From contig CM097885.1 in NCBI GenBank assembly GCA_044892525.1, forward strand, positions 36,828,001 to 36,892,000: a DNA stretch of 64,000 bases, written 5' to 3'. Shown piece after piece: positions 19,380 to 56,150 of the stretch. The notes under the pieces were generated by a model that ran no database searches, had not been told where the DNA came from, and saw only the letters and a program-made list of their open reading frames with translations. Source of the stretch: Schmidtea polychroa. Its lineage: Eukaryota. Numbering within the stretch: position 1 is the first letter of the stretch; the number at the start of each line of letters is the position of its first letter. The translations under genes were made by a program, and so were the position numbers.

Positions 19380-19518
19380 GGGTAAGTCCTTCTATGGCAC
19401 CATTGAACCCGTACCGAGATTTTACCAGGAGTAGTTCTAACATAGGAGCTCACCTGCTGTAAATTCCGACCTATGTGCGCAGTACCAACGTGTCACACCG
19501 CCACGGGCACACATAAGG
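19380..19518 (+). ncRNA. Conserved structured RNA motif, copy H
   Basis: AGTTCT-AACATA-GGAGCT-CAC; TATGTG(C)GC-AGTACCAA-CGTG...CACG-G-GC(A)CACATA. Confidence 0.75.
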
Positions 19519-19972
19519 GAGATGAACTGCTAGTCATACTGGATACTTAGGGAACCTAATTCTGAGAGCGTAGGAACATTTACTTTTCTTTTCTTCCCTG
19601 GGTACCCAACAACATCTAGTCTATATTTATATACAATTTTTAATTACAGCACTTTCTTCTGATATCTTTCCAATCGATTTTACAAATCTTTTCAATGTAT
19701 TAAAAATATTTTCTAATATAAAGCATTTTGTTTTATAGAAATAATTTTCATCTTCACTATCACTGAATTTTTTTTTATTTGAAATATATCAACAACTTTC
19801 TCTCTAAATAAATGGTTAAATAACTTTAATAATAAACATTTAGGTTATTTTCTAGTATAGGGGTTTATAAATAAAATAGGAGATTATAACTAATACAGTG
19901 GATTATAAAAAAGATTAATTGAAAAATTGAAACATTAAAAAAAATTAGAAAAAATAAAATATTAAGTAAATA

Positions 19973-27467: not shown

Positions 27468-28319
27468 TCTTAAACAATCAAATTGTTTAATTATTTTATT
27501 TCTCTTTCTCGATTTTCTAATTGAATTACTTTTTTATTTTTTCTTATTCTTCTTAAATTATGCACTTTTTGTCCTAGCTCCTTCGTAATAATCATTCTTA
27601 ATTGTTTATACTATTAATTCGTTCATTTATTTATTCTTTTCTTTTCAATTTAACAGATTTTTCGAATGTGTAGTTTTTACCTTAAATGTGGTGGTGATTG
27701 TAACTACTTGCGTTTATCATTTTTATACGTGTTTATTTATCTTGAATGTGTTGTGGCCTTTACTTTGTAATGTTTGATGTGTTGTTGTTTCGAGTTGGTT
27801 GTTGGTTACGACTCAGTTGAAAGATGTGGTCAAAAGGGCTTAGTTAATCGACATGACATCGTAATGCAGTTCATGTTGGTACTGTGTACAGGGGCTGAAT
27901 GTAAGGAAAGGTAAGCCTTCTTTTTCGGACTGATCTTGAAGTGCATTCATAAATATTTGGACGACTGATAGAAGGTCTTACGTCTAACGCAGTGATCTGT
28001 GGGTATATAGTCATTTTGATATATGATTGAATTTTCATAAACCGTTGGATAAAAATGAACGAATTGATCGAAACAAAAGAAACGTGAGCGAAATGATTAC
28101 AAAACAGCTAACACTATCAATCTTACCCATGTTTGGAACTTGATTATGTCCCAACCTTCTTTACTACCCTAGCTAAAAATTTCTGAGTGCAGTATTCTGT
28201 GCATTTCCATAAAATGTTATTGCTAGAGGATCTCTCTTCATATAATGTATATCTTTTTGATTAATAACATTGTTAACGTTATCCTTCCTGCATTAGCATT
28301 ATTCATTATGAGCGTACAA

Positions 28320-29645: not shown

Positions 29646-30239
29646 TGTTGGGTTAGAACTGATATCTAGACCCTAGAGCTCGTAAAGGTGACAAAATATG
29701 GTTTAGTCAAAATTAAAAGATAAATCATTAAATAAACAGTAATAATTAGGAGAAATAACAGGAAATAAAAACATTGAAATTAAAAATAAAATCTAACAAA
29801 TACAAGAAGTATTACAGAAAAATTGACTCAAACATAACAGAGAAACATAGAAATACAAAAAAAACTCGAATGAAATCGAAAGATAGTAAAATACTAAATT
29901 CTAGACAAAAATCCAGAAAAATCCATAAAATGGCGACATCCATCATAAAAGCCATGCAAATCAATAAAAGTTAATGAAAATAAATAAATCACGTTTAAAA
30001 ATAAAAAATTTGAAAAAAGAATTTTTCTAATGATCAACTTAGGAGTGATAAAACGGTTCGACATACGTATCGGTAGGGTTGAAAAGATCTCTAAATTAGT
30101 CATACAAAACTCTAAATTGTAAATTGATATCATTCTCAAGAATATAAATCACAATCTTATAGTAACTATAAATTTAAGCTAATTATAAAGAATTAATTTA
30201 TGATCTTGATTTCTTAAAAATGTAAAGTATAGCTAATGT

Positions 30240-31430
30240 ATAGTAAAAGTATCAGGTATAAATAATAAACTTCATTTCTTAAAATATATAAATCATAAGC
30301 TATAAACTCGACTTCGTAAGAAATACAATTAAAAGTGTAAAGTAGAAATTATAAATTCTATTTCTTAAAAATATAAAATATAAATTACGAACTCGATCTT
30401 ATACAAGTATAAATTATAATTGATTATAAAAGTGTAAAGTATAAATTATAATCTTGATGTTCATAAAAATATGAAGCATAAGTATAAAATATATATTTAG
30501 TTCCATAAAAATATAAATTATAAAGTATAAACTTATGTTCTACCTAAAAATATAATCTAAATTCATATTATTCCTAAATTATAAAGTATAAATTTACATT
30601 ATACCAAAAATATAACTTATAAATATATATGACTCCTAAATTATAAAGTATCAATCTATTTATATCAAAAAATAACTTACAAATTCATCTTATTTCTAAA
30701 TTATAAAATATAAATTTATATTATAATCAAAAATCTAACTCATGAATCTATATTATTACTAAATTATAAATTATAAGCTTAGATTGTACTTAAAAATGTA
30801 ACTCATGCACCTACATCATGCCGAAAATTATACTATTCCTAAATCATAACTTGAAAACCTATTGTACATTTGAATATTTAAATTACAAAACCATAATCTT
30901 CCTAAATGATAACCTATAAACTCGATATTATAGAAATGTAAATTATAATTAATAAACTTTAAATCTCCTTTCATAAAATGTAAATTATAAATTGTAATCT
31001 CGATATTCATAAAAATATAAATTATAAATAAATATAAAATTATAAAGTATAAATTCAGTTTCATCAGAGTATAAATTATAAAGTATATTGAATTCATATT
31101 ATGCCAAATTTACAGTTTATAAATCGTATAAATGATGAAAATTTTGTAAATGACCCCCCCCCACTAAAATTATATAGACACTAACCATCATCTAAATAAC
31201 CTAAATTAACCTATTATAATATATATTAAGCTTACATCTTATATAAAAATATATATTGAAAATTTTGTAAATGACCCCCTAAAATCGTGCAACCACTAAT
31301 CATCATCTAAATACCCTAAAGTAGTTTATTACAAAATATATTAGGTTTACATTATATATGAAACGTAAATTGTAATTTTTGTAAATGACCCCCCTCAAAA
31401 TCACATAGTCATCTACCTATCTTAGAGTAG
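30240..31430. repeat. Degenerate AT-rich tandem repeats in the 5' part of unit A
   Basis: TAAATTATAAAGTATAAA-like units, and three ~120-bp units each containing TTTTGTAAATGACCCCC (near 31141, 31262, 31378). Confidence 0.7.
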
Positions 31431-32228
31431 CCTAGTACAATATACATTAAAATTATATTATATATCAAGACATAAATTATAAAGTTTTATTGAATACCCC
31501 CCCCCCCCCCCCCCACCAGGAGGCAGGGCGATCGACTGCCACATTAAAGATCATTCAGAAACCATATATATACCGTATATATTTTTAACCTACAAGTTAT
31601 AATTTAAATTATTTTTTTTGGGTCATATGACAGTTGGGTGGGGCGACGCTGCAACTCGAGCGGTATATGTAGGTAACATTTTTCTCTAACCATAATATTG
31701 AATTAAGAATTTCCTTTAATAATAAAGTTTTGGGCTAAATTTCGGAGTGGAGAAAACTGGAGCGAATAGAAAAAGTAAACCTCGAAAAATAAATGAAATA
31801 AGACAGAAATATAAATTACCATCAAATCTCACTAGTAAATAGGAAGGAACAATAAAATACCAATAAAAGAATAAGAATAAGTAACCAAACTAAATAAAAC
31901 CCAATAAACCCCTTAAGATTTAGAAATAAAACGATTTAAGACACACAGCGGATAAAATAGAAATAGAATAAGCAAAAAAGTGAAACAAATAAACGGGAAA
32001 TTAAAGAAATAAATAAAAAATAAAACCATTTTTAAGTCAAATTAAAACAAAAAAATGATATTACAATAAAATAGCAATAAGTCCGCAGGAAAAATAGGAG
32101 AAAAATAATAAAAATAAGAAAAATAAATAAAATAATAATAAGAAATAAGTCAAGTCATTAAAATTTAATATATGATAATAAAAACATAAAAATAAGAATA
32201 AATAGTAAAATTACAAGCAAGTCGCGTC

Positions 32229-32253
32229 CTGATTGGACGAAAAATACTATATA
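32229..32253 (+). promoter_or_regulatory. LTR promoter CCAAT+TATA (unit B)
   Basis: CTGATTGG, 11 nt, TATATA. Candidate splice donor AG|GTATGT at 32454. Confidence 0.75.
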
Positions 32254-32538
32254 TGTAACGTGAAAAAGTAGAAAACTACCACTTTAATTTTCACGATTAC
32301 AGATATTCCACAGATTACAGAACCATAATCACAGACACCAATTCAGAGACTCCAGAACTTAAATTCAAGAAAACTTACTTAGCGACTAGCGACCAATTTA
32401 TTCGAGACCAGTTTTAAATTTAATTCAATTTGTTCCAGTTGTCGAAGCTCTAGGTATGTTGATCTATTTATGTTTGTTAGTTCAATTTCTTCGATGGTAA
32501 AAATTAAAAATAAAACTCATTTCATATAATAAATTTAT

Positions 32539-33702
32539 TTAAATAAAAATAGCCTTTTTCTTCATGGTGCCGGCGACTGTACCATCTGGGAGCTCCAAGT
32601 ATGATGTGGACGAATCGGAGATATGTCGCGGTGGAGAACATAATCACGAGGAAAATTTTCATCATATGTATCCGGAAGATGTTGAAAAGAAAATATGATG
32701 CTTGAGAAAATGGTATTTGTCGTATGAGAGGTTTGCCAAGAGCATGACAAAATTGCGATTGTATAGAATAAATGACATCATACTTGGTGTCCAAATGATA
32801 GGGTCGCCGGGTGAGATTTTATTATTCATTTGATCATTTTTATTATTTGATTATCATAAATTGTGCACGAATGGTTGATTTGCGAAGAATGAGTCGAACG
32901 GTCCCTCATGACGGTGCAAGAACGGCGGCAGAGATGAATGCATTCTTGGGTGGGTCATGAGGGGTGAGGAGACTCCGTAGGTTGAATCTAGTTAGAAGTG
33001 GAATTTCTCACACCGAGCGCGATCACTCATGGAGTATCTTCGTTTTATGCAGCCACGCCGATGTTTCGAGAATAGAGAAAATAATGCAAATTCCTAAAGT
33101 CGGAGACATTTTCGGGTTGAGATCCATAGTTCTTCACCGTCAGTAGCTTGCTTTCCGTCGAATACCGATAATTGTCCTAGTTGGGGTGGGCGATGAATGG
33201 TTCGAGTTTTTTCCAGAAATAGATTTCATACCAGAGTATCAACGCCACACAGTCGTAGCGGATCTATAGTTGAGATTAAAATTTTCCTCTATGTCATGGA
33301 CGAATCGTCGGACATCGTTTCAGTGAGGCGTTTCCTTCGAAAAATCACCGAGAATTTCTGCTAGACATTTTGGAATTAAATCCTGAGATGTACATTGCCA
33401 GGGATTAGCTAGTAAACCCATTCGTTGACCGAATTTGACTCTAGTTTGACATGAGTATCCGATAAAGCTTGATTTGATATCGATAACGGCGCGCCTAAAA
33501 TAGGAAAAGATACATTTGTTCTTGGTAAGGAAAGGAATTACTTGTTGGGAGTCCGGACGGAGCTGTCAATGGCGATAGGAAGCTCTTCCGCCTGTTTCGT
33601 AGTCAGGTATACTTTCGACCTGGAGGATTGGCCCAATATTCTGATAAAGACATCTAATGTATCGATTGAGGGAGGAGGCCGTCGAGAAAATGAGTTGACC
33701 AT
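32539..33702 (-). pseudogene. Antisense intron-containing accessory gene of unit B, decayed
   Basis: ATG at 33702. A 47-nt GT..AG intron (33541-33495) restores the frame when removed (…RTPN|KRAVIDIKSSFIG…). The gene ends LPDGTVAGTMKKKAIFI* with AATAAA overlapping the stop. Confidence 0.7.
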
Positions 33703-34093
33703 TTTTATCATGAGTTAACATAATGAGCAAATCTGAATGATAAGATTAATTCTACTCTACTGTTGGGCTGAATCGAAAATTTAATCGTTGAAAAATAAGA
33801 AAGTAGGAAAGTAGAACATTAAGGAAAATAAAAATAAAATAAATGAGATCAGAGATAAAATAGAATAAGATATAAGGAAAATAATAATTAAAACATAAGA
33901 ATTAAAACAAAAAATAAAATTAAGTAAAGATTAAAATAGAACAAGTTGACAAATAAATAAGGAGGAATTCAAGAAATAATAAGGAAATTAAGGAAATAAA
34001 TAGAAAAACATATTAAAAATAAAGAAAATAAGGAAAAACAACCTAAAAACAAGAAAATTATATTAAATTAATAGAAATAAGCGGTACTCAACT

Positions 34094-34130
34094 CTGATTG
34101 GCCCGCACAAATAAGAATTTGCTATATATA
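34094..34130 (+). promoter_or_regulatory. LTR promoter CCAAT+TATA (unit C)
   Basis: CTGATTGG, 21 nt, TATATATA. Candidate donor GTAAGG at 34415 and acceptor TTTTACAG at 36385. Confidence 0.75.
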
Positions 34131-34639
34131 CAACCACCAAAATCATTAAATTTACTGTTAACCCCGAGGATTTTATAGGTAAGAGAGAATGTTTAAACTG
34201 TCTACTGTTAACCCCGAGCATTTTATAGACATCCACAACTTACGGAGACACATTCAAGAATCAGAGACACTAACCGAGCAACAGTTCATTCAGAGAATTC
34301 ATAGCTACTTACAATCAATTCGAAGTTAAGAGATTTGTCACAGCAATCGATATTCCATCAACAAACTCATTCAGAGCGACTCACATTAATTTTTCGATCC
34401 AGCCTAATTCGAAAGTAAGGGATTTTATTTCATTCATTTATTTAAATTCGAAGTTAACAGTATTATGTATCTTTAATGAATAATTAAAAATTTTGAAAAA
34501 TGACATTGACTCTCTTTTCATTTGATCCCAATTAATGATTTCGATAAAATAAATAATTTAAAGGTCTAAAAGTAGTTATTAGTAATAAATGAGCGATTGC
34601 ACGATCTTTATGATTACTGTTATGAAATACCTTTTTATG

Positions 34640-35700
34640 ATTTTTAAAGTAACGAGTAACGTGGAGTTGAGGAACCGCGGATCATGGTGTGAGGTGCCTT
34701 CGGGAGCTTAGCCGGTGGATCTGAGGTTCTTCAATCACGCAGCTAGATTGGGCCGAAATGTGAAGGCTTCTTCACGGGCCCAATCGCTGAAGGATTGACT
34801 CAAAATTAGACAGAATGAGGAAAAACGATTTAGATTTGTGACATGAATTTAGAACGAATACCGAAATGTACAGTGATTGAGGTGGACATTACATCTGCAG
34901 TGAGTTTATTTCCATCCTGAGGAACCATGCGATCCTGAGACTAACTCTTCGCTAGCATCGTCGTAATCAGTCCAATTTGACTCTAACATCGTACTAAATT
35001 CCACACTTATGTTCGGTTAATTAAAAATTAGGACGAATTCTATATTCCTTCATTTTTCAGTTAAAAATAAATAAAGCTCTAATGTATAAATAACATTTAT
35101 TAAAATTAAAGTAAAAACACAACTCCTGATAATCATTTTATTTAACTTATACTTACTAGTAAACTAGAAATACCCGTTCAGCAGTTTCCACCCCATCACA
35201 TCAGGATGTCTATCATCGAAATAATATCCACATAGAGTAGGGAGTTGAATTGTAGAACTTTTTCATCAAGTAATATCTAGAATTGAGGAAAATCTCCAAA
35301 CATAGTAAATAATTCCAAAAAAATTCCAAACGAGAGAATTGTCATGAAAATTGAACGGTTGAGAATTTGTCCATATGATGTGCGAGTACAGATAAATTTT
35401 CCATTGAGTAGGCACACTAGCATGACTATGGGTAGCAACACCAGCGTTAGAATTACCTGAGAAATACACACGAGGATAGATGATAATCACGCAGTGAGTG
35501 CATGGCTAATCATGGTAATCCGTGTTCCATATGTCGTATCTAGCATAGATTCTAGCATTACGACTGATAACGACGGGATATTGAGTACTCGTCATAGTAG
35601 CTCCATGAATAGCAGATGATGGCTCTCGTAGATTTTTGTGTTGAAATGCGGTCAACGAAAGATAACTACATGCAGTAACTTTTCACAAACCACTCATCTG
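34640..35700 (-). pseudogene. Antisense accessory gene region of unit C
   Basis: Higher-GC coding-like pieces (ORFs 35266-35490, 35277-35471), an LPEGT-like motif near 34710, and QWK..WR similarity to the unit G plus strand. Exon structure unresolved. Confidence 0.45.
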
Positions 35701-36395
35701 GAAAATTTTCGAATGAATTAAATTTAACTGATAATAGAATGACTAAATGGATAATTATAGACAATTATAATTCGAATTAAATAATTTAAAGGATAACCGA
35801 ATGACCAAATGCGTAATTGTAGACCAGTATGAGTTAAACTAAATAATTTAAACGGTAACGGGTATTGTTAAATTAAGTGGGGATAATTGGGACCTGCTAA
35901 CTAATGATGGAAAACTAAAGCCAAGCGTTAATAATAGAGTCGGAAATTGTAAATTCGAGTGTTCTAACGAACAACGAATAGTAATTTTGAATAATAGGTA
36001 AATTAATTCGAGTTCGTGAATAATAACATTTTGAATAACCATGGTAAATATTTTAAATGATAATTAAGAGTGTTTTAAAAGCTACTCAAATGTACATTTT
36101 AATAATCAGATATGTTCATAGACCAACAATCATAGGGCAATTTAGTAATTAATAAACCTTCTCAATTTCTAAGTTAAAGATTTATTTGCATTCGTCAATG
36201 CTATCCCTTTAATGAACTATTCGTTAAATAAAAGCGATGTTACAAAATCGTCTAGAAGGGAAATCCATTCCCCTACTTATTCCGAATACCCGCTAACTGC
36301 TGACAGTGACTACCCAACCTCATTCGACCTGCGATCTTATTCATATAAAAGATTTACTAAGTCGTTATAGTTCCTTATTTTACAGTTGATCAATT

Positions 36396-37145
36396 ATGGT
36401 GCCAACTAAGAAATCCACCTTACGTCCTTGCTTCTCTTGCGCGGACAAAAACGCGATTATAAAGGATCTTCAGGCCCAGATCGGGCGCTACAAAAAGAAG
36501 ATAGATGAGCTGGAGGGCACTTGGTTTACCCCCGCTCAGATGAAGAAGACTCAAAAGAAGCTTCATCGTAGTGAGCATTGTCGGGACGCGCTCATCTCTG
36601 AAAGCCGTGCCCAGAGAAGCCTTATTAAAGAACAGTCAGAAGCGCTGCACAAAGTCTACGTGCAAGCAGCTACTACACAAAAAATCGTACAGATTCCCAT
36701 CAAAGAGGCCGATAACATCTTCCCGCCTCATCATAACCCCTCATCAAATCCACCTCCACCGTTCAAGAGACCCTGTCGAGACTGCGTGGAGACCGAACTG
36801 TCACCTATGCGACCGGACGTTGTCATCACAGGTACTAGTAAGACCTCAACTGCTAGTATCTCTGTATCCGCTGCGCTTCAGCAAGTCGCATCTGCAAGCA
36901 AACCCAAGCGCAAACAATTATCTCGTGCGGAACGTAAGAAGAGACAGCGTGAGCGCGCATCCACAAAGCCGAACATCCCATCGATAGAAAATTCAACCAG
37001 TGGTAGTAGTTCGCGCGTGTCCATCGACTTGACAGTAGGACCCCCAGCGCGCATCATCTCAGCAGCTGGCGTGACGTGGGAGGAAAACGCCTCCGAATTC
37101 TTTAATCTGGATGAGTTACTCGCCGACACCGAATGGGGAAAGTAA
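36396..37145 (+). CDS. LTR-encoded accessory protein, intact 249 aa
   Basis: PCFSCADKN, coiled-coil-like heptads, EGTWFTP, Pro-rich linker, KPKRKQLSRAERKKRQRER and acidic FNLDELLAD tail. Five homologues in the window; preceded by a splice acceptor. Confidence 0.85.
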   Translation: MVPTKKSTLRPCFSCADKNAIIKDLQAQIGRYKKKIDELEGTWFTPAQMKKTQKKLHRSEHCRDALISESRAQRSLIKEQSEALHKVYVQAATTQKIVQIPIKEADNIFPPHHNPSSNPPPPFKRPCRDCVETELSPMRPDVVITGTSKTSTASISVSAALQQVASASKPKRKQLSRAERKKRQRERASTKPNIPSIENSTSGSSSRVSIDLTVGPPARIISAAGVTWEENASEFFNLDELLADTEWGK

Positions 37146-37415
37146 GAGAACCACAGTGGCATTCCCGAAGCCTGTTGCGAAGTCGGACTACATTTGTTGG
37201 GGTGTTTTTTCTTTTCCTTCGACAAACATTCGTTATGTGTACAGTTGAATCCTCGTGTCTAAATGTTGTAATTAATAAATTTTGTTGTTTCATATATTTT
37301 CGTTTATGAATAGCCAGACTTTGATTAAATAGGTTAAATAAAGCGTCTTCGAGAGCTAAGGAATAATCCACGATTTGTTTTCGCGAAATTCCGACAAACG
37401 GTGGTGTAATGAGAT

Positions 37416-37561
37416 GGACGTAAGCCCTTCTATCGGCAGTCGTGAATGGGAAGTCGAGGCCTCAGCAAGGAGTATTTTTAAGGCAGAAGCTCACCTGCTT
37501 GCTGGAGTCTCGCCTGCATAGTGCAGTACCAACGTGAAGTAATTCACGGGCACTATGTTGG
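37416..37561 (+). ncRNA. Conserved structured RNA motif, copy C
   Basis: Outer stem GAGGC.TCAGCAAG/CTTGCTGG.GTCTC; inner TTTT-AAGGCA-GAAG; CATAGTGC-AGTACCAA-CGTG..CACG-G-GCACTATG. Confidence 0.8.
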
Positions 37562-38030
37562 AGGAAAGTTATGTGGGGTTTCACTCCAGGTTGACAAGGC
37601 AGTAGCACATTTTATTCGAGATGGACAATCCACCCGTAGACCAGCCAATATTGTAGAGTAGTCAGCCGAGGTGTAACCCCAACACTACTATACCCACGAG
37701 TAACCTACACAATCAAGTTTCTTGAGTTTTCGAACACACCAACTGAATTTTCTGTCTTAACTGGAACCGTATCTGCAACGCTATATCTATTAATTACTGC
37801 CCACACATACACACCTGCATCACACTCAAATTAGATCACAGTGAACATGTGGACATCAGTATTACTTAATCATAGTGAGAGAGTCGTAAAGCTGCATCTA
37901 CGAGTGGTCCACTAGATTTCTTCAACGAAAAATCACAGCACGATGAGAACAATTTTTGTTGTATGCAAGTTGCTAATTAAATATTCAGACATGCATTGCA
38001 AAGGAACCGTCGATATTTGTTGGTATAGAT

Positions 38031-40659
38031 CAGGGGTGGCAAAACTTTCAAGTCTTGCGGGCGACTTTTAACTAAATTAAATCTGGCGGTCTACCAGAAA
38101 AACTATTTTCAATTGTTACCTGTAGTTATTCTATTTATTCTATTTAAATACAAAACGAATTAGAAAAAAACTTATAATACTTTACTAGAACGTAAACATA
38201 TCTTAATATAATATTATTTACTGCTACTACTTGCACCTGATACGTGGCACTGCATCTTATCAGCAAGTTCTTCGTATTTCGGGCAATAGGAGCTTATGGC
38301 GATCCGCAAGCATGATTCCAAATGATCATCTGTCAAACAAGATCGATGTTTTTTTTAATGACATTCATTGAAGAAAAGGCTGATTCACAAAGATAGGTGG
38401 ATCCAAAAAATGCGGACATATATCCAACTACTCTCCGCAAAATTGGATATTTTTCTTCTGAAATAAGATTCCAAAAATTATCTTCGGTTGTAGCTCTTGA
38501 TTTTAAGTAAATGTCGCTTTTCAACGCTATTATCTCATCTTCTAAGCAAGCTGAATCTGAATCCAGAAATTCATTAATCTGAGTAGCGATCTCCTCTGTA
38601 TCAATAACATTATTAAACGGGAATGACATGAACATAGCAATATTTGCAATTTTAGATAAATCTGCGAAACATGTGTTAAATTCATTTAAAAGGGTAGTAA
38701 TTTGATTTGTATATTTATCGTAAAGAATTCCTGGCGCATTTTTGGATTCTTCTTCCATGTTTTTAAAATGTTTCAAATCACCCCGTTCTAGTTGACGCAC
38801 AAACAAGGACAGTTTCTCTTTAAACGTCTTTACTGCCGTTATCATGTCAAGAATTGATTTGTGTCTCCCCTGAAGCTGTAAATTTAATTTATTCAGGTGC
38901 TCTGTAATGTCGCAAAGAAAAGCAAGATTTATCAGCCAACTTTTATCCTCCAGTTCGGGATATAATTCTTCTCTTCCAGTCAAAAACTGTTTTATTCCGG
39001 GCAAAAGATCTCTAAATCGTTTTAAAAATGCTGCACGGCTAAGCCATCTTACATCCGTGTGTAACAATAATTCAGTATTTTCAATTTCACATTGTTCAAG
39101 CAAAGTTCGAAATTGACGTCGTTGTAGACTTCTTGCACGTATCGAATTTACTATTTTAAACGCAATATTCATTACATAGTTCAACACTTTGGAGCATAAG
39201 GTTTGCTGGTGGATAATGCAATGATACGAATGAAAACTGGGAATTTCTTCATCATTTTTGCAAAGTGTTACAAATCCGACATGTTTTCCGATCATAGACG
39301 GAGCTCCATCCGTGGTAATTGATACCAACTTGTGAATCGGGAAATGGGTGCGACTTATAAAAGACTTGAATAAATTGTAAATATCTTGACCCCTTGTTTG
39401 TCCTTTCATTGGAAGAATAGTCAATAATTCTTCTCTGGTTGACATATCATCAAAAAACCATTCGAATGAAGATGCATAGTTGCGCAGTATCAGTGAAATC
39501 TGTAGATTCATCAAATTGCAAAGAGAAAAAGCGGCATTTTCGAATATCTTGCCGCAAAATATCTTCCAAGTTTTTGCTAATGTCCACCATTCTTTGCGTG
39601 CTAGTATTGCGCGCCAATGACATATTGTTGATACAATCCATTATTTCGGATTTATTTTTAAAATCTTTGAATAACACCTCACCAGCTTCAACAAACGCCT
39701 GTTTCCATATTTCGCCATCTCCAAAAGCTTTTTTATGTTTCATCAAAATATTAACTACCTTGAATGATGCTAGGGTAGCTGTTTTTGATTTTGAGTTAAA
39801 TTTCGTAAAAAAAGTTTGTTGTGCACCTAATTGAGACTTTAACTGCTTGACTTTGTCTTTTCGTACCTCGGAATGTAATGGAAAGTCAATTTCATACTGT
39901 TTGTGCACTGTTCGAAAATATCGTTCAACGTTAGCTCTTTTAGGTAGTGCTACGTTTGAATTACAAATGAGACAAACACACTTATCTTTCATCATTATGA
40001 AAAAAAATTCCTGTTCCCATTCAGTATTATAATGGTACGTTTTAGTTTTTTTGGCCGGTTGTGTCATTGGGGCTAAAACAAGAAAATAATAAAAGCTAAA
40101 ATAAATTAAATATGAAAATTAATGTTAAACACACTTACATACTCAAAAATTAAAAATGTTAACTTTTATAAAGAATTTTTTTTAATAAAAAAATTTTGAA
40201 ATTAATATTATAAGCAGGTATTATTCAATACTGAAATACTTCAAGCTTTCAAATTTTTCTAACGAAAACAATTTGATTTCAAAATTTTTTTATTTTATTT
40301 TGGTTGTTTTTTATTTTTTTATTCCTTATCGAAGATTGTAGCGTCAATGTTTTGCTTTTATTTTATGGCCTACTTGTTCAAACACATGAAATTTATTCTG
40401 ATTATTAGCTAACTGTATATATTTGAATTTCAAACTAAAAGTTTACTACACTCTGAGTGTTATCTGACTAATATTATGTTTCTTATTGGAATTTTTTTGT
40501 CATATGAATTGAAACTTATTTTAAATATGTTTATAAAGTTAGAAATTCAATAAATAAAAAACTGATTTTTATATGCAATTTTCCATAGTGCTAGCGGGCT
40601 ACTTTCGATAGCTACGCGGTCGACCAGTCGACCGCGGTCGACGCTTTTTGCCAGCCCTG
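38031..40659 (-). mobile_element. Buster/Charlie (SPIN/GTF2IRD2-like) hAT transposon, complete
   Basis: TIR CAGGG(G/C)TGGCAAAA, TSD GTATAGAT (38023-38030, 40660-40667). Confidence 0.95.
38214..40067 (-). pseudogene. Near-intact hAT transposase with two homopolymer frameshifts
   Basis: FDESTD, TTDGAPSM, HCIIH, DVRWLSR and STYLCESAFS. Frameshifts fall in a T-run near 39455 and an A-run near 38350; the C-terminus LTDDHLESCLRIA is recoverable. Confidence 0.9.
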
Positions 40660-41262: not shown

Positions 41263-42025
41263 ATGAATGCCTCAACCAGCTCCGGGAAAACCCTCCGTCC
41301 TTGCTTTTCCTGTGCTGATAAAAATGCCGATATCGCACAGCTCCACTTATACATCGGGGAACTAAAGAAGAGAATTGACCTCTATGAGGGGACGTGGTTC
41401 TCCCCACCACAAATGAAGGAGGAGAAGAACAAGATTCTACGTTTGGAGCACTGCCGTGACAGTCTCCTGGAAGAGAGCAGGTGCCAGAGGCTAACCATAA
41501 AAGCCCAATCAGAGGCACTGCACAAAGTATATTCCGAATCAGAAATAGCGAAGCGAGTTCGCGAGTATCCAATACAAGATGGGACTAACGTGTTCCCAGG
41601 GCACCACCAATCAGCGGAAACACCATCCACAACTAGTTGCAAGGGGCATGGCTTACAATTGCCGCCAATCCCCGCCCAGTCCTTTCTGGTTACCGGCTTA
41701 TGGCTGGCGGTCGATCGGACCCTATCTTGGCTCCAATCCTTGTGTCACCCCTCATTCAGCCTCCAGCAGAAGCCACCTTGCCACCCCGAAAGCGTAAGCG
41801 GCCGACCCGCTCGGAGAAAAATCAGAAGCGCAGAAACGCCATGGCCGCGCTCGAGGCATCGTTATCTGCAGCCAAATCGACTATCAAGGAAATTACCGTT
41901 ACCCATTCCATTCCTACAAAGAAGTATTCCGGGTAGTTCCAGCCGACAGCATCAAATTCCTCGAAGATCGCCGATTGCCCGTTGACATCGACGAGATGCT
42001 CGCAGAAGGAGAAGCATTCCCGTAG
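41263..42025 (+). pseudogene. LTR-encoded accessory protein of unit B, two 1-nt deletions
   Basis: PCFSCADKN, EGTWFSP, PPRKRKRPTRSEKNQKRR, VDIDEMLAEGE; frameshifts near 41677 and 41925. Confidence 0.85.
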
Positions 42026-42308
42026 TGAATCTTCCCATCGGCCCCGATTCCTCTACCTTATGCCTGAACTCGAATGATTTGACAATTATTGTGTGCATGT
42101 GCTTAAATGTTTCATCATTATCCAACTAATATGTACTGTCGTTTATGTTTTTTCATTTCAATACAACCGTTCTATTTTCTCTGACTGTGTTAGTTATATG
42201 GGTGATTTACGGTGGTTGAATTGAACGAGAAGGGGATCCTGAAGATATAGTATGAGCTTAAATGTCGTCCCCTTGGGCCGGGGCCGGACTGAATCACATG
42301 TATAGAAT

Positions 42309-42449
42309 GGGTAAGACCTTCTAAGGCACCGTAGAACCCGAACCGAGAAAGGGTTAGGAGTAGTCCTAAGGCAGGGGCTCACCTGCTAACCTTTTCCAAC
42401 CCGTGTGAGCAGCACCAACGTGGAACATCGACACGGGCTCATGCGTGGG
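42309..42449 (+). ncRNA. Conserved structured RNA motif, copy B
   Basis: GAAAGGGTTAG/CTAACCTTTTC outer stem; AGTCCT-AAGGCA-GGGGCT-CAC; GTGTGAGC-AGCACCAA-CGTG..CACG-G-GCTCATGC. Confidence 0.8.
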
Positions 42450-43220
42450 AATATGTGAATGATCATGTGAAGTATGTGAGGGAATAGTCTGAGCAGAACG
42501 ATGTTACTGGATCTGTATGATAATCATGTATGTATAAATTTTTTCTTTTTCGCATACGCCAACAAAAGTTTAGTTTGGATCACCTTTTCCCCAATGACAT
42601 AAATGTAAATCACCGACACCTATCCTCAGTAAACTCCTTCAGATCACATAATCAATGGCAGCGAGATCGCTAGTAATCTTAATAAGTCTTAACAATACAA
42701 AGCCCTGACTTCAATTTGAATTATATCAGGAAAAGGTCTTGAAAAATGGTAATACGAAAATATAACTAAATCACTCACATAAAGAAAAGAACGTGGAAAA
42801 CGCACAAAATTTTATTATCTGACAAAATTATTAAATTTCATGAGATGACACCGTGTTGGCAGTGAATCAGTATCCAAGTACTTTTTCGACATTAAGCAGA
42901 CTAAACTCTCGTGAACGACTGAGGTACAATTTAATTTGGTTTTACAAATTCAAATAAACCAAAATTTTAGTTTATTAAGATGATTATTCGCGTCATAGAT
43001 GATTATTAGTTCGAGGTCTAGTTTTAGGCTTTCTTTTGCTGTGAGATGATAGGTCGGGTAGTACGGTCACGAATTTTCCCTTTTCTTTTGTGTTTGGGAT
43101 CTAGTACTACCAATTAAAAATTGACCTTAAGCGTGGAGATTGAATTTTACTATTATACGATGACCGACAGAACTATATCTTAAACAATTATAGAAATGTT
43201 CCAATCCAGCATCTACGATG

Positions 43221-43772
43221 ACAAAGAATCAAACCGGCAGTTAATCACTCGACTCCGGACTGGAACTGGGGTCGAGACCTGGAAAACTACGGTCCAGTAA
43301 TATGGAATGGACCCGAGGCCGATGCCCGGGCGTGGGTTAAACCGGAACCCTACAATAACCTATTGGTGGAGGCCCGCGACCAAGCGATGGCAGAATTAGA
43401 AGCAGCGAAAATCAAACTGTGGAAAATCGAGAACCAGCTGCGAGTAGAAGCAATGGGGATCCGGGAACTCGAGGGCACTTGGTTTAGTCCGACCGAAATG
43501 AAGAAGACGTCTCAAATACTACAACTTCAGACTCAAGCCGAACAAGATCAAACTGAAATCCGTGCGTTAAGGTTACAGATACGCGCGTTAGAAACCAAGC
43601 TGAATCAACAACTTATCAATGAGGCCACAGCAGCAGAGATTCGCCCTCTGCCAACAGAATTGGCCGAAATATATCCACCGGCTCCGTCAACCTAAACGAA
43701 GCGTAAGAGGTTAGGTCGAAATACCCGCGAAAACCTAAAGAAACTCCGGCTGGTAAGGCTGGTAAGGACCTA
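43221..43772 (+). pseudogene. Divergent LTR accessory protein of unit A
   Basis: Open frame from 43221 with IRELEGTWFSPTEMKK and a coiled-coil-like segment. After an in-frame TAA at 43693 it continues TKRKRLGRNTRENLKKLR. Confidence 0.7.
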
Positions 43773-43929
43773 ACCCAAACTCAACCATCAAAGGTGTTGT
43801 AACCGAGAGTACATTTTGAGATTTAGCATAAATTAACGTGTATTTTAATGTGACTTATGTTTGACTGATGACAGAATGATGGGTGTATATTTTGGAAAAC
43901 AATTGTGACAAGGGACCTGAGTGAAATCG

Positions 43930-44064
43930 GACACATCTTCTAACGATAGTCCGTGTACCTAAGGAGTGCCCGACAATTATAGTGCAATTAGTGCGCTCAC
44001 TTTTTGCGAGCACTCCCCAACTTAATACAGTACCAACGTTGATTACTCAATGGATATCAAGCGG
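43930..44064 (+). ncRNA. Conserved structured RNA motif, copy A (most divergent)
   Basis: GGAGTGC/GCACTCC outer stem; AGTGCA-ATTAG-TGCGCT-CAC; AGTACCAA-CGTTGA..TCAATG-G. Confidence 0.7.
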
Positions 44065-44140
44065 TAAAACAATGTTGTATCCTGGGTTACGCTGGTAACA
44101 GCACGAAAAAGTAAATCATTTGATCATCAGTAACCCACCA

Positions 44141-45592
44141 TAGTGTTCGAAAATAAGATAAATCCTTATACTTTTTATCACCATGAATTTTAGTCAAATG
44201 TTCTTGTAGTCTGGAAATTTTCTTGGCTTCGTTTGATAAAACTTTCTGGCAAATCAGGCACATAGGTAATTTATTGTTTATGGGCGACTGAATAAAGCCA
44301 AATTTCAAATATTCTATATTATATTGTCTACATTTTTTTGTTTCAGCCATTATCGTCTGTCTAAAAATAATATATATCAATAAATTTTTAAATGATATAT
44401 TTTTATAATTTTCTGCAATATTTATGTGAATATCAAACTAAACTGATAAAATCAATAAACATGATATTTTAATTTATAAAGTGCATATAATTACTACAAA
44501 ATAAATAAATGTCGTGAAAGCAGCGACTTCATCGACGTCGGATGCGCCGATGCAATGTATATTTCCAAGCAATTACTACAATGTAAATGTGCTGATGCAC
44601 GAGCGTGGATATCTACGACACTTCAATATCAATGCTCGGATGTCTTTTTCAGGATTTAGAATATTTCTATCGAAATATATGTCTTCAATGTATAATGCGC
44701 GATGATGCACTGCGCCGATGCAATGTGTGGAATGGCAAATTGCAATGCTAAAAATGGCAAACTCCGCATGGTTTGCCCGGAAGTTCCCGGACTTCTAAGA
44801 AGCACAGTTTTCTATATTCCACGGTGGGCTACTCGCCGGTGCTCGCCCCTTCCAGGAAAGTTCCCACTACCCCAAGGGAAATCAAAGCCCTGTGGCATCG
44901 GTAGAAAGTCGGGAAACCATGTGGAACGTTTCTCACTAGGTTTTAGGGGCGTAACTATTAAAAAGGCCTGCACAACGTTATCACATTATGGATAATCAAA
45001 TAATACTGATATTTGTTACTTTTTCACCGTACATGTACTTAACAATTTATATTTTAAACTAGTTTAACTTTATTTTAGTTGCCTTTACTTATTTTAACTA
45101 ATAGTTGTGTAATTTTAAATTGTGTATCGCTCATTTATTTAAGAACACAAAATAACCCGCAACGTTGTTGCCACTAAAGCCATGTAATAGTCAACTGAAA
45201 AACAGCACCTTTATACTCAACATAGTAACACAAATAAAAGAAAACAAAAATCGTACTTCCGCAACATAAATAATAATCACCAATTATAGAGGCACTATTT
45301 GTTAGTTAACTTTAACTAGTGACAATATCACAACAATCTAACCTACAATTATATTACGCTAGCAATTCAATAGCATCACATGAACAGTAGCGGTGCGGGA
45401 TTGTACATACATACCTCGGCGCAAGTGATAAAATGAAGCATCATAAACGGAATACATAAATAAATTTTCCTAATCTTCTTGACTTACTTTTATACTTTCA
45501 CTGCCTCGTTACAGTTATTTATCCCCCCCCCAATCCACCTGTAGCCATCACTGCCCCCTGGATCGCTGCAGCGCCCACTTTGGGAACCACTG
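44141..45592 (-). mobile_element. 5' part of the split Buster hAT (N-terminal ORF + TIR)
   Basis: ATG at 44350: MAETKKCRQYNIEYLKFGF...CLICQKVLSNE..RLQEHL..YFRTL. Terminal TTTGGGAACCACTG at 45579-45592 is a CAGTGGTTCCCAAA TIR. Confidence 0.85.
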
Positions 45593-48459: not shown

Positions 48460-48920
48460 TTACGGTGCTCTACTAGTACCCGTGATAACCAGCTCTGACG
48501 TGGAAGGCGACAGATCGGCCTCTACAAAATCGCGACATCCCGGTTTGGACGAGAGATTAGAATGATATGGAAAGTCGTGATTGATGGGGAAATGATTATC
48601 CGCTTCGGCGATTGGAATATCCACTATCTTCTTCGTAACGGCGTCCTGTAGGTAGACCTTATGCAGAGCCTCCGACTGCTCTTTTATTAGGGATCGTTGA
48701 GCTCGGCTCTCCTCGATCTAACTGTTCCTACAATGTTCGCTACGGAACAGTTTTTTTTTACCTCCTGCATTTAGGGTGGAGAAAACCAGGTTCCTTCCAG
48801 GTGATCAATTTTCTTCTTGAGCAATCCTATCTGTACTTGGAGGGTCTTGATAATGCTGTTCTTGTCCGCATAAGAAAAAAATGGGTTGAGAGAATTCTTG
48901 GTTGATGATCTAGCTACCAT
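48460..48920 (-). pseudogene. LTR accessory protein of truncated unit G (C-subfamily)
   Basis: DKNSIIKTLQVQIGLLKKKIDHLEGTWFSPP*, then RSEHCR..ESRAQRSLIKEQSEALHKVY...VITGTS, collinear with 36396-37145. A strong acceptor TTTTCGTTTAG lies 4 nt before the ATG. Confidence 0.85.
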
Positions 48921-50334
48921 TGTTCTAAACGAAAAGAAAAAATATATATACATGTTACGAAATATCATTATGGTAGTCGGAGTTCATACGGGGGGGAGTG
49001 AAAAACATTCGAACTGATACAAGAAGAAATTAATATTTACAAAATCCATAATAATCAACAAGATCGCTGCAGGTTGATAGGATAAGTAGGACATCATTGA
49101 CGATTTTAGAAATAAACCTGTTATTAAATTATGTCGTTGATATATCTCTGTTACCAGTTGTTTCATTAGACGATCGTTATTTTATTTTATTATTAATTAC
49201 GAAAAACTTTATTCATCTAAAATAATTATGAAAATTTATTTAAAATCATTTTGGAAAATTTATTTATTTTAAATTGTCAGAATTTAATGCAACCAGCTGT
49301 TGATTAGCGTAATTAATGTTGTTCCAACGTTATCTGATTATTAGCATATTCGTTATCGCAACACTCCGTCTCGTAACTCTATCATATGCAACCATGATTT
49401 TTATTGCACTTATCTGGTCTAGAATATCAGCAGTAGTATCTCTGGTACTTACTAATGTTGCAAAAGCTTAGTATCGGTGTGAGTGACCGGTTGACTACTT
49501 TTATTTAGATATGAATTAAAATTTGTCTACTGATACTAACGGCTGACCCGTAATTGGGTTTGTGTGAATTAAAAATGTTCATCTGACTACATTTGTTAAA
49601 AGACCTCATACACTTGATTAGACTCTTATCTTCTCGTGGCATTCTACACATGTTTTTATGCTAGTGTGATCGTTATCGCACTAGTCTACTCGAGGTGTGG
49701 TCTAATGAGTTCATCTAAAGTCAATCTCTTAGTGTGTGATCGTTGGCAATTATGATCTATGTCGACCAGGTGGACGTTTAGCTGTTTTAATCAATGGAAA
49801 TATTCGTGATATTTTACTAACTTCGATTTGTTTAATCCTCTAATACTCTGGGAAATGTGGCGTTTATTCTCATTCTAGTGCATTATCTCGTTAATATCAT
49901 GGAAATTTCGACGGAACGTACTGAGGTGTGATTCTGGACAATTTGTTACTATTATATGATCAACAGTGTGACACTCATGAATGGCTCTGCAGATATGTCT
50001 TAAATCTTTCATATCATTTGCATGGCACTTATTTAAAATTTTAAATACATGGAATTTTTCGATTGTTTAGTCAAACATATTACATGAATTACTAATCCAA
50101 GCATAAAATAAAATAAAATAACCACCAGGTAATCTGAATAGTAAAATCAAAAACTTATTAAGTTTGTTTACTTAGTATTTTATTAATAACTTATTCGATG
50201 AGTCTTATCAAATTTCTTAAGAAATTCTTGATATATTTTTATGAACATTCAAATTTATTGCCAACAAAGTACGGCGATTCATATTCTACTAATAATAAAT
50301 GTCAAAAATTAATATTTGAAAAAATAAAAAATTA

Positions 50335-50535: not shown

Positions 50536-53500
50536 CAGCGGTGTCCAACAGAAATTTGATTGTAGCCACAATCGTCAATTTAGAAATTTTCATTCGCCAC
50601 ATTAAAATAAATTTAAAACAAAATGTTTTATAATAGTTTTTTATTTTAATCAATTTTAGGAATTACACAAGTTTTTTTAATAACATTAAACACAAAATAC
50701 AAAAATTATTTAATGTGATGCTTGGCAATTTTTTTCTTGCACAATACCCTTGAAATCTGGTGGAAACCTCACGCTAACTGCACATTTTAATTCTGCCTCC
50801 AAATTTTCATCACTAATATTGGATCGGTATTTTGATTTTATGAAAGTTACAGCTGAAAAAGTAGATTCGCAAACCCAAGTTGTTCCAAACATACTCAATA
50901 GCTTCGCAATAGCTGAGTTGAGAACCACAAACTCATTTGACTTTAAGAGGCGTGTCCACATCATTAAAATAGATTCATCGTTTCTAGAATAATTGATCTG
51001 ACTTTGAAGTAAAAGCATATCTGCTTCAAAATCACGTCGGTCCAAACTTAGCAAATTCGCGATATCTTTAGACAACTCAGAATTGGTGATGTCAAAATGG
51101 AAAGGATCTTGCATCAGTTGAAAAGCAGGTCTAAATTTCTCAACATCAATAAAACGTTCTTCAAATTTTTCTTGTAGTTTCTGTAACCATCCGACATAAC
51201 GCTGTATATTAAAATTGGTATCTTCTTTATATTTTTCCATATTATCGAAATGCGTGAAATCATAATCTTTTAACTGTGTCACAAAAAGTTTAAATTTAGA
51301 GACAAATTCTCGTATATACTGTGCCAAATCACATATTAGCTTTCCTTTTCTTTGAAGTTTTAAATTTAATTCATTAATATGTAACGTTATATCAGTGAGA
51401 AAAATTAAATCGCATTACCATTCCTTATTTTCTATTTCAGAAAAATTGATAAGCATTTCTTTTTCTTGAAGGAAATTTCGGATGGGATTTAATAATGATA
51501 CAAATCGTTCCAAAACTTTACCACGACTTAACCACCGAACATTTGTAAAAAATAGCAGATCTTTAAATTCAGTGCCCTCAATTTCCTTTAAAAGCTCCAG
51601 AAACTGACGATGGTTTGTAGCACTACTACGAATATAATTAACAACTTTAACAACTAAATCCATCATATTTTTCAAAATGTCTGTTCCAGATAATTGAGCA
51701 CATATATTTTCCACATGTATCATGCAGTGGAAAGAAGCGACCAAGCATACGTGTGTTTGTTGTTTCAAAATACCGACAAATCCAGATTTTTGTCCAAGCA
51801 TCGCTGGAGCACCATCTGTTGTGACAGAAACTAATTTCGTCATATCTAATTGAAAGTCTTCAGCGACACTTTTGAAAATTTCAAAAATATCTACGCCTCT
51901 AGTACGGTCTTTCATTCCACGGATTGTCAACATTTCTTCATATATTTCCAAGTCTTTTGAAACCAGGCGTATCCAAAAAATTAACTGAGCAGTGTCTCGG
52001 ATGTCACATGACTCGTCTAATGCTAAAGAAAAACATATACAACTTTTCAAATGTTGGAGCAATTGCTTATTGATGTTTTTCATCAAGTCTTGCATTCTAC
52101 GAGCAATAGTTTGGTGACTCAATTGCATGTTTTCTATTTTTTGCATTATATCTTTCTTCAAAGGTTCTTCATAATTTTCAAGTAAAATTTCCATAATAGA
52201 CAGGACAATCTCTTTGATTGGTTCTCCATCCGAAAAAGGTTTTCTTTTTTGAGCTAAAATCCAAGCCGTTTTGTAGCTAGCCAAAGTAATAAGTTCGGAT
52301 GTAGTTAAAAACCGTTTAAAAAAAGATTGCTGTCCATCTAATTTTGACTTTAAGCGAGTTATTTCATTCGTTCTAACTTGCTTGCCGACAGGAAACTTAC
52401 AATCAAATTCACTATGCATTTGTTGATAATGCTTTTTTATGCTGTCCACTTTATTGTCATTAAAAGTTTTGTTACACAATATACATACAGTTTTTTGGTT
52501 TTGTTCCATTACAGCAAATTCTAGTTCCCATTTACCATTAAATTTGCGGCAAACCTTTTTCCAATCTCTTTTTTGGGTTCTAATTGAGTTGAACCAGTTG
52601 CTTCTTCTTGCCTAGCTGAACTATCAGTATCGGAATGTCGTTTTAAATATTTATCCATTTTTTACGGTGAAATAATTTTAATATAATTTCAAAAGAATAA
52701 TATGTAATATTTAAAGTCGCACGTTAGTTGTTTATTTAACAAAAACAAACATGAGACTAATACATGGGATTCATACAACGGGAAAACAAACCAAAAAAAA
52801 CGCCTACTTTGATGAAAATGTCATTTGTTTTTAAATTTTAAAAAAGCGTTTTCACAAATAGATAAAGTGTAATCACAAATAGATAAGAAGCACATTTTGG
52901 CATAAAATTTTTTTTTGTTTTCTTCTGTTTACTACTTGTAACAAAATTATAATAAATTAGGAATTAACTTAAACAATGATAAATATGAATGAGAGTGCAG
53001 ATACTTAAAACATCCTACTGTCTCACTATGTGTACGTACGTAATGTTAGTTGGAACATAGTGCATTGGTTGGAAAAAGCAGTCTATATATAAATTTACAG
53101 AAAAGTACTGCTGTCTACATCTATTACATTCATAACGCTAACATAGTGTTTTTCGGTATACGACAGGTATACGGTTACTGACTGAGTTGCTACATAGTAT
53201 AATGAGAGGAAAGAGGTAGATTAATATAGTTTTTGTAGAATGTAGAGCTATCTCCTTTTTTTTCATTGTAACCCAATTGTAAACAACAGCAATGCAGGTA
53301 AATAACAATAATAATCATTTAAATTACTTTAGTTTATCTGAAAACACCTAAATTAATTAAAAACGAAATTTTAGTTCTTAATAAACAATCACATGACACT
53401 ATGTGTACGTAAATTTGACACACCGGGATCTGCCATGAGCATTTCTTAGCATGTAAGATTACAAAATAAAAATTTGTCGTTGTTTATGTTTTGGTTACAA

Positions 53501-54557: not shown

Positions 54558-55006
54558 TTAATAAAATTTAAATAATTTTTATATACTTTTAATAATAAAT
54601 TTAAACAAATATAAACAATAATATTAATGAAATGAGATTAATTAAAATGGAATTAAGAAATAATGCCGTTTATCAAATTGTAGGTCCTAGTGTTAGAGGG
54701 AAAACTTTATTTGTTTGTAAATTATTACAATCGAATATGTGCAAATCAAAATTTAATAAAATATACTGGCATAAAGGAGCTGATGACGAGCATGTTATGA
54801 CACAAGATCAGTTTTGTAAATTAAAAATGAATATAATGAAGGGATTTGATAAAAATTGGTCATCTAGATTATATCAAGGTGATGTTATAATTACTGTTGG
54901 CGTATGAGGGGAGAACGGAAAAATAAAAATTCATCATCAGCTGTACCATCACGTGTATTCAACTCAGATCTTCCCCGATCATACTCCAATTGACTTCACG
55001 AATATT

Positions 55007-55147
55007 CCCTCATGTGAGCCCGTGGCGATGTTCCACGTTGGTAGTGCCCACACGGGTTGGAGTTGGCTAACAGGTGAGCCCCTGTCTTAGGACTACTGAT
55101 AACCCGCTCACGGTTCAGGTTCCATGGTGCCTTAGAAGGACTTACCC
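55007..55147 (-). ncRNA. Conserved structured RNA motif, copy D
   Basis: AGTCCT-AAGAC-AGGGCT-CAC; GTGTGGGC-ACTACCAA-CGTG..CACG-G-GCTCACAT. Confidence 0.8.
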
Positions 55148-55444
55148 CTATTCATACATCAACCACGGTCCGGTCCTGGTCCAAGGGATCGACCTTTATC
55201 CTGACTACATTCATCTCACAGCATTATTTCGTTTATCCTGATTTCAAAATCAAACATACGGGAACTTCACAAGTCAAAATCGAACAGAAAAATAATATAT
55301 TGACACCGAAAACACAAAAGAAAAAATTACATCGTGACCAATGATAGATTAACAACATTCGATCAATTTGCACATGCAGCATTATCAACGTTTGCAAGTC
55401 GAATCACAACCCGAAGAGAAATCGAGATCGAACGTAGATCGTTT

Positions 55445-56150
55445 CTAGGCAAAGTTTTCTCCGTCGGCGATTATCTCATCGATGTCGACAGGCAATCGAC
55501 AATCCGATATGAATCTGATGCCGTTGGCCGGGACAATCCGGAAGACTTCCTTCGAGGGGATCGAATGGGTGGATGATATTTCCGTTATTTTTGACTGCGC
55601 TGCAGACAATGATGCTTCGAGCGCCTTTATCGCATTTCTCCGTTTTTCATTCTTCTCGGCCCTGGTCGGGTGTTTTCGTTTGCGAGGTGGTGGATTTTCT
55701 CCTACAGCCGTAGTGACGGTAGGTGCCACTAGAACCGGGGCCAGAATTGGGTCAGACGGAAATAGGTAAATATCCCTTTCATAGGTAAATATCCCGACAG
55801 CACTGGGGCTGGGATGGGCGGTAGATGTGAACCGTGCCCTTGACAAATTGTGGTAGAAGTGGTAGAAGACTGATGGTGGAGAGGAAAAACGTTTGTTCCG
55901 TCGACGACAGGAAATTCGTGCACTCGCTTGGCTAGTTCTGCCTCCGTATAGACTTTATGGAGGGCTTCGGACTGGGCCTTTATTGTGAGCCTTTGGCAGC
56001 GGCTCTCTTCCAGTAGGCTGTCCCTACAGTGTTCTAATCTGAGGATCTTAGCCCTCTCCTCCTTCATTTGTGGCGGGGAGAACCACGTACCTTCGTAAAG
56101 ATCGATCCTCTTCTTGAGGGCCCCGATGTACAAGTGCAATTGAGCGATGT
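55445..56150 (-). pseudogene. LTR accessory protein of unit D, N-terminus deleted, one frameshift
   Basis: DIAQLHLYIGALKKRIDLYEGTWFSPPQ..., PPRKRKHPTRAEKNEKRR, VDIDEIIADGE; frameshift at a short duplication near 55780. Confidence 0.85.

Follow-up and report, generated by a model that had tools for sequence, protein, structure and literature searches.

The stretch of Schmidtea polychroa DNA analyzed here (hereafter the window, 64 kb in length) is A+T-rich, with a G+C content of 23-43%, and carries several LTR-like units, the typical one about 2.2 kb long. These units contain (i) an orphan open reading frame (ORF) of ∼240 codons and, nearer to their 3' end, (ii) a structured motif of about 140 nt, of which the window holds six good copies, numbered c1 to c6 along its length (Table 1). 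An ORF inside an LTR is unusual. The termini of the carrier unit, TGTTGG...CCAACA, comprise a 6-bp inverted repeat; the unit ends read TGTTGGGCTAAA...CCAACA for c2 and c6 and TGTTGGGCTGAA...CCAACA for c3, and a CCAACA end is also present for c1 and c4. The original prediction had spoken of LTR copies without giving evidence, and this description is now supported by TG..CA termini together with 4-bp target duplications. The latter flank all three testable copies, namely as GTAA (c6), ACAT (c2), and CTAC (c3), and were not found for c1, c4, and c5, the 5' ends of which are missing or unclear. Near-matches to the LTR 5' terminus at 29646(+) and 60339(-) are probably further LTR 5' fragments without the motif, and a few hundred nucleotides inside each near-match lies a 110-nt similarity (29908-30018 versus 59997-59888).

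The window has 82 stop-to-stop frames with a length of 75 aa or more, none of which matched a reverse transcriptase, integrase, protease, or gag, and the only domains found were of the hAT type and of the Sleeping-Beauty-type HTH (Tc1/mariner-like). We therefore regard all copies in the window as solo LTRs. The ends and the target duplications are the sole basis on which we call the units LTR-like. The possibility that the 2.2-kb unit is a whole mini-element (TRIM- or LARD-like) was ruled out, as the unit lacks direct repeats at its own ends; local alignment of the first with the last 600 nt of the c6 unit scored 22, where shuffles scored 20.5 on average and 30 at most. The carrier is probably a retrovirus-like repeat family of the gypsy type, and giant gypsy-like elements with env-like parts are known from planarians (PMC6431247).

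Remnants of hAT-type transposases lie at 10741-12545(-), 15815-16723(+), 38336-40118(-), 44090-44437(-), and 50713-52611(-), with zf-BED, Spin-doc zinc finger, DUF659, DUF4371, and hAT dimerization domains, and some of them are nested in, or adjoin, LTR-like units. Tandem repetition is seen in regions 62300-63760 and 30180-31500, at periods near 30 and 48 nt and, in an A+T-rich array, near 31/61 nt; inverted matches join 5720-6080 to 63530-63996, and a run of 235 N occupies 6153-6387.

Table 1. LTR-like units, ORFs, and copies of the RNA motif in the window
Feature	Position	Strand	Remarks
Unit carrying c6	54895-57113	-	2219 bp; starts TGTTGGGCTAAA at 57113, ends TACGCCAACA at 54895; GTAA on both flanks
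Unit carrying c2	14704-19611	+	Nested hAT-like insertion; ACAT on both flanks
Unit carrying c3	33761-37684	+	Longer than the c6 unit; CTAC on both flanks
Unit carrying c4, 3' part	41263-42564	+	Ends CGCCAACA; 5' end not found
5' fragment of another LTR-like unit	31728-32602	+	Homologous to the c6 5' part
ORF, c3	36396-37145	+	249 codons open, unbroken
ORF, c4	41263-42022	+	Broken; conserved parts in three frames, at least 2 frameshifts
ORF, c6 (approximate bounds)	55445-56217	-	Broken, at least 1 frameshift
ORF remnant, c5	43363-43745	+	N-terminal domain only, at least 1 stop
ORF remnant, further unit without the motif	48460-48968	-	At least 1 frameshift
Motif copy c1	2197-2331	-	CM 91.5 bits
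Motif copy c2	19380-19517	+	CM 132.6 bits
Motif copy c3 (copy named in the original prediction)	37418-37561	+	CM 113 bits, MFE fold, pattern matches
c3 Domain I	about 37418-37455	+	
c3 Domain II hairpin	37456-37511	+	GCUCAC at 37489-37494
c3 Domain III	37513-37561	+	8-nt bulge at 37525-37532; ACCAAC at 37528-37533
Motif copy c4	42309-42447	+	CM 140.8 bits, fold
Motif copy c5	43924-44064	+	Most divergent; CM 72.3 bits, fold
Motif copy c6	55009-55147	-	CM 133.8 bits, fold
Decayed seventh motif copy	27857-27983	-	Domain I block and CAGUACCAAC kept; CM 16.7 bits
Decayed eighth motif copy	657-822	+	Eroded towards A+T; CM 17.1 bits

With the c6 unit as the reference, the anatomy of the unit comprises (i) a 5' part of about 0.9 kb, which has a G+C content of 23-35% and is dense in AATAAA and TATAAA words, followed by (ii) an ORF region of about 0.75 kb, (iii) a poorly conserved spacer of about 0.3 kb, and (iv) the 140-nt motif. 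The motif resides 270-330 nt downstream of the ORF, always on the same strand, and is separated from the LTR 3' end by 94-165 nt in the good copies (c1 to c6) and by about 57 nt in the decayed seventh copy (27857-27983). A comparison of c4 with c6 gives 82-84% identity for the motif, as high as that of the best part of the ORF, versus 33-52% for the flanks; more generally, the flanks have decayed to 20-50% identity, whereas the motif has not. We found no consensus structure in the tail that follows the motif; apart from its terminal letters, this tail conserves only a short block of the YTCTGAG type. The block reads TCTGAG (TTCGAG in c3) and lies 40-55 nt past the motif in five of the six copies, for example at 42487-42493 and 54965-54971(-). 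All tails lack both AATAAA and ATTAAA, as do the 450 nt before the motif in c4, c5, and c6; c1, c2, and c3 contain one or the other between the ORF and the motif. The positions of the poly(A) and TATA words follow no consistent pattern, and word searches did not settle the R/U5 boundaries.

Most copies of the ORF are broken; moreover, only the last ∼33 codons are recognizable in the c2 unit, and a hAT-like insertion takes the place of the ORF region in c1. The first ∼120 codons are conserved, with 55% identity between c3 and c4 and an invariant EGTWF-P turn, and further conservation is seen in a basic patch (KRK..R.E....R) and in an acidic/hydrophobic end, (L/I)DE(L/I)(L/I)AD.E. In the AlphaFold2 model of the product, residues 15-39 and 46-98 form two helices (pLDDT >90) that make up a hairpin, residues 174-189 form a basic helix, and the remainder is disordered. 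Searches of Pfam, PHROGs, the PDB (by sequence), and BFVD (by fold) returned nothing significant, a word-index search retrieved no homologs, and exact-sequence look-ups retrieved no DNA. A profile search with the ORF found 15 gene models in which its domain is fused to unrelated host domains (ribosomal L21, transporter, subtilase, actin), and in public protein sets the domain is present only as a piece of such chimeric gene models. Fusions of this sort are what one would expect of a dispersed repeat ORF that gene prediction has swallowed. The link between the ORF and the motif is one of adjacency only.

Six copies of the motif were found where the original prediction had placed them, namely at 2198-2330(-), 19380-19518, 37416-37561, 42309-42449, 43930-44064, and 55007-55147(-). 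A covariance model (CM) was built from these six copies and used to place and score copies in the 64-kb window. The six good copies scored 72-141 bits, and the CM added two decayed copies, in which the Domain II inner hairpin and the ACCAA bulge are still visible. The pattern GCTCAC-N(20-50)-ACCAAC has 6 matches in the window versus 0.07 expected, and ACCAACGT has 7 versus 1.05 expected. The seventh ACCAACGT, at 21741, was set aside as a chance match, being without all other parts of the motif. Because c2, c4, and c6 are alike at 73-83%, the six good copies represent about 4-5 independent lineages. A pattern scan gave three matches in metagenome contigs, all of them one unrelated sequence, and a single match in viral contigs; the CM scored these at no more than 12.6 bits, and only partially, and thus no relatives of the motif were found in either set.

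Minimum free energy (MFE) folding of each copy singly yielded the same two hairpin domains, with modest folding energies (z of -0.6 to -2.0). Domain II comprises an outer stem of 11-15 pairs, an internal loop with a U on the 5' side versus CAC on the 3' side, and an inner stem of 6 bp that starts with A-U, G-C, and U.G and is closed by a loop of 5-6 nt. Domain III comprises a stem of 5-11 pairs, an 8-nt bulge (A-N-Y-ACCAA), a 4-6-bp hairpin starting with CGUG (CGUU in c5), and a single G that stands opposite the bulge and precedes the 3' strand of the stem; this domain's outer stem is largely broken in c5. The stems quoted in the original prediction for Domains II and III are present, with one reading to be corrected, as the stem given as AGUCCU/AGGGCU is AGUCCU/GGGGCU in c4 and c6. 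The prediction was accurate as to the invariance of GCUCAC and of the U.G pair, which holds across the copies, as to the recurrence of UAAGnCC and CUUCUA of Domain I in most copies (c2, c3, c4, and c6), and as to an upstream CCC-UUGGRCC-GGG hairpin in three of them (c2, c4, and c6). The Domain I sequence is kept in the four good copies just named and in one eroded copy, and the pairing of this domain is weakly supported. Pairing of the UUGG loop of the upstream hairpin with CCAA of the bulge is conceivable, but it would amount to only 4 bp and is missing in c1 and c3. The LTR 3' terminus, UAC(N)CCAACA (2035-2044(-), 19602-19611, 42555-42564, and 54895-54904(-)), resembles the invariant bulge sequence UACCAAC, and the LTR 5' terminus, UGUUGG, is complementary to both; these correspondences may be fortuitous or may reflect either RNA contacts over a long range or a protein site common to them.

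A structured RNA conserved by covariation had been proposed, and both pairing and compensatory changes indeed exceed those in shuffled and slid controls, where the counts refer to six sequences and about 4-5 lineages. In a plain MAFFT alignment, 80.0% of the cells pair, versus 66.9% in column shuffles, with change on both sides in 22 of 39 pairs (observed value reached by 0 of 500 shuffles), and sliding the 3' partners by 1-3 columns gave 35-49% pairing. The CM-fitted alignment behaved likewise, with 82.5% of the cells pairing versus 68.4% in column shuffles, change on both sides in 23 of 38 pairs (again reached by 0 of 500 shuffles), and 37-46% pairing after the same slide. The Domain II outer stem contains compensatory changes at 13 of its 15 pairs, and its versions in c1, c2, c3, c4/c6, and c5 show essentially no sequence relationship. 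Of the unpaired columns, 17 are invariant, in agreement with the invariant unpaired letters of the original prediction. Further, in most pairs of copies, sequence conservation is lower in the paired than in the unpaired columns; c4 and c1, for example, are identical at 45% of the former and 64% of the latter.

The strand of the structure can be read from its G.U pairs, which make up 26 of 223 cells and include one invariant U.G. On the complementary strand these cells become mismatches, and pairing falls to about 71%, the level of the shuffles. The invariant U.G and the 26 G.U cells therefore assign the fold to the given (sense) strand, the same as that of the neighboring ORF. Coding sequence was ruled out as an explanation, since neither strand offers a reading frame that stays open across the motif in every copy. 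Taken together, we consider it very likely that the motif is a real RNA structure under selection.

The motif fits no catalogued family, in line with the original prediction: a scan with Rfam 15, at the gathering score over the whole window and at a permissive E ≤10 over c3, c4+c5, and c6, gave no match on it. The families in Rfam 15 include hammerhead, HDV-like, twister, twister-sister, pistol, hatchet, and hairpin ribozymes, as well as IRESs and retroviral cis elements, and the motif therefore lies outside every curated family, including the ribozymes against which it had originally been weighed. The sole match at the gathering score in the window is a mir-753 precursor (57622-57682(+), exactly at the gathering score, 62 bits), which is located about 0.5 kb outside the LTR-like unit carrying c6; the mir-753 family has been described from planarians. 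A microRNA precursor was ruled out for the motif itself, as the Domain II outer stem has arms that hardly agree in sequence from copy to copy and no miRNA model matches, and a tRNA-like or SINE origin was ruled out as well, since ARAGORN finds no tRNA-like gene in the window. We class the motif as a putative new family among retroelement LTR/leader elements, a known kind of RNA.

We hypothesize that the motif acts in cis, as an RNA domain of the sense strand that lies toward the 3' end of the LTR (on the R/U5 side), and that it docks a protein that decides the fate of the RNA; this role is predicted from architecture, and we assign it a probability of roughly 0.4. The architecture in question is that of two hairpin domains that would present fixed single-stranded letters on stems of freely changing sequence. 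Domain II would offer a U opposite CAC beside the invariant A-U/G-C/U.G stack, and in Domain III, the 8-nt bulge (A-N-Y-ACCAA) would face a single G and lead into the CGUG-type hairpin. These internal loops may serve as docking sites for a protein that steers the full-length RNA, either to nuclear export and expression or to packaging. The protein could be encoded by the element itself, as the product of the LTR ORF, with its putative oligomerizing helical part and basic helix, or as Gag. We infer that the motif is transcribed, that it belongs to R/U5 rather than to U3, that it is bound by protein, and which proteins are the likeliest partners. The original prediction had named ribozymes, IRESs, and protein-binding RNAs by way of analogy. 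Because the motif lies 57-165 nt before the LTR 3' end and ∼300 nt past an ORF with a basic helix, we read it as a cis element of the retroelement's own RNA and not as a ribozyme. Its place near the LTR 3' end hence also puts it near the primer-binding site (PBS) in a full-length copy.

Cis-acting RNA structures of LTRs and leaders have been examined in depth for the retroviruses of vertebrates and the Ty elements of yeast; to our knowledge, hardly any have been described from the very large gypsy-like elements with which planarian genomes are filled. A fold beside an ORF with a basic helix would be a handle on the RNA control of these elements (export, packaging, and priming), and if the ORF and the motif belong together, they would constitute a regulator/response-element pair that evolved independently in an invertebrate retroelement. 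As a marker, moreover, the motif can serve to annotate the LTR family and to tell its old solo LTRs apart from host sequence.

The place of the motif also allows for a scaffold in the initiation of reverse transcription, which we regard as doubtful. Here, the motif would reside in U5, about 100-160 nt upstream of the PBS in full-length copies, where its bulge would contact the primer tRNA a second time or the motif as a whole would help to organize the U5/PBS initiation complex; U5 elements in retroviruses and PBS-flanking boxes in yeast Ty elements act in that complex. The distance of 94-165 nt between motif and LTR 3' end in the six good copies agrees with such a role, as do the invariant 8-nt single-stranded bulge displayed on a stem and the tail devoid of a poly(A) signal, which fits U5. 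However, neither a PBS nor a primer tRNA is identifiable in the window, which contains solo units only and no tRNA gene.

The constant relation of motif and ORF brings up a 3'-UTR element of the ORF's mRNA, with a role in stability, localization, or 3'-end formation. U3/R would then house the ORF, an arrangement resembling that of the accessory genes at the 3' terminus of complex retroviruses, and the fold could draw the cleavage site and a remote poly(A) signal together. While the motif is always found on the ORF strand, 270-330 nt downstream, and c1, c2, and c3 have AATAAA or ATTAAA between the two, c4, c5, and c6 offer no such signal in their tails or over the 450 nt that precede the motif, and the motif is without the U-rich internal loops of the kind that clamps poly(A) tails. 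We therefore consider this role unlikely.

Were transcription to begin in the A+T-rich 5' part of the LTR, the full-length RNA would have the ORF as its first cistron. The motif, which lies between the ORF and the LTR end, might then act in translation (as an IRES or as an aid to re-initiation or shunting) between the ORF and gag. A cluster of TATAAA and AATAAA in the first 0.9 kb of the c6 LTR is compatible with such a start, but an R/U5 of >1.3 kb would be unusual, the tail, PBS, and leader separate the motif from any downstream start codon, and no IRES family in Rfam matches, which makes a translation element quite unlikely.

An explanation devoid of any RNA function would attribute the fixed letters to DNA-level sites (for a transcription factor or the integrase) or to recent common descent, and the stems to accidental palindromes. 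The ACGTG-type letters in the fixed block could indeed be a DNA site, the letters at the LTR 3' end almost equal those of the bulge, and only about 4-5 lineages are available. Nevertheless, the stems differ nearly throughout between lineages and still pair, the G.U asymmetry points to one RNA strand, and decay has affected the flanks and not the motif; we judge this explanation very unlikely. Least credible of all is a new class of self-cleaving ribozyme in flatworm retroelement LTRs, in which an active site would arise through docking of the two fixed internal loops on each other, since, for all the concentration of invariant letters in these two loops on covarying stems and the precedent of LTR-borne ribozymes in plant retrozymes, no ribozyme family matches even at E ≤10, cleavage in R/U5 would sever the element's own full-length RNA, and the units are not arranged as the short tandem repeats or short LTRs of retrozymes.

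Among known systems, retrozymes and other repeat-borne ribozymes share with the motif a conserved RNA fold in retroelement terminal repeats. They differ in that the motif matches neither the hammerhead nor any other ribozyme model, and in that its LTR, at 2.2 kb and with an ORF, is not a short noncoding repeat. PBS-associated cis elements include U5 inverted-repeat stems, primer activation signals, the Ty1 boxes, and the bipartite PBS of Ty3. The motif is similar to them in showing a fixed single-stranded segment near what would be the U5/PBS junction, with neither PBS nor primer tRNA in the window.

The R/U5 elements of retroviruses include the transactivation and poly(A) hairpins as well as Rex-type response elements in the LTR. 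The motif is like R/U5 elements in (i) its location in an LTR near the 3' end, on the sense strand, in (ii) stems that vary while the letters of bulges and loops are fixed, and in (iii) the binding of a viral or host protein, which is to be expected by analogy. It is unlike them in having no relationship to them by sequence or in Rfam, and in belonging to a flatworm repeat family with a far larger, ORF-carrying LTR. In retroviruses, host RNA helicase A is bound by a structured RU5 element, the post-transcriptional control element (PMC1885656, PMC2836548).

The preferred reading, that of a protein-docking element steering the full-length RNA, has its closest counterparts in export systems, namely the constitutive transport element (CTE) of simple retroviruses and systems of the Rev/RRE type (reviewed in PMC4338338 and PMC4488727; contrasted in PMC10309623). 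By analogy with these, the asymmetric conserved internal loops on a long stem would be the recognition surface, and here, too, a small protein is encoded beside the RNA, with putative oligomerizing helices and a basic helix in its predicted model. In contrast to these systems, the motif is placed in the LTR, whereas theirs lie between env and the LTR or inside env, and no RNA or protein homology to them was found for the motif or the ORF. A further counterpart is Cer1, a gypsy-type LTR retrotransposon of Caenorhabditis elegans, in which the orphan accessory protein CERV is needed for export of the full-length RNA (PMC10309623). CERV is a large, multi-domain protein made from a spliced mRNA, with no cis RNA element defined for it (PMC10309623), and it differs from the ORF described here, which bears no similarity to it. 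Cer1 resembles the carrier of the motif, however, in being an invertebrate LTR element that encodes an orphan protein, and CERV shows that accessory export systems exist outside the vertebrate retroviruses (PMC10309623).
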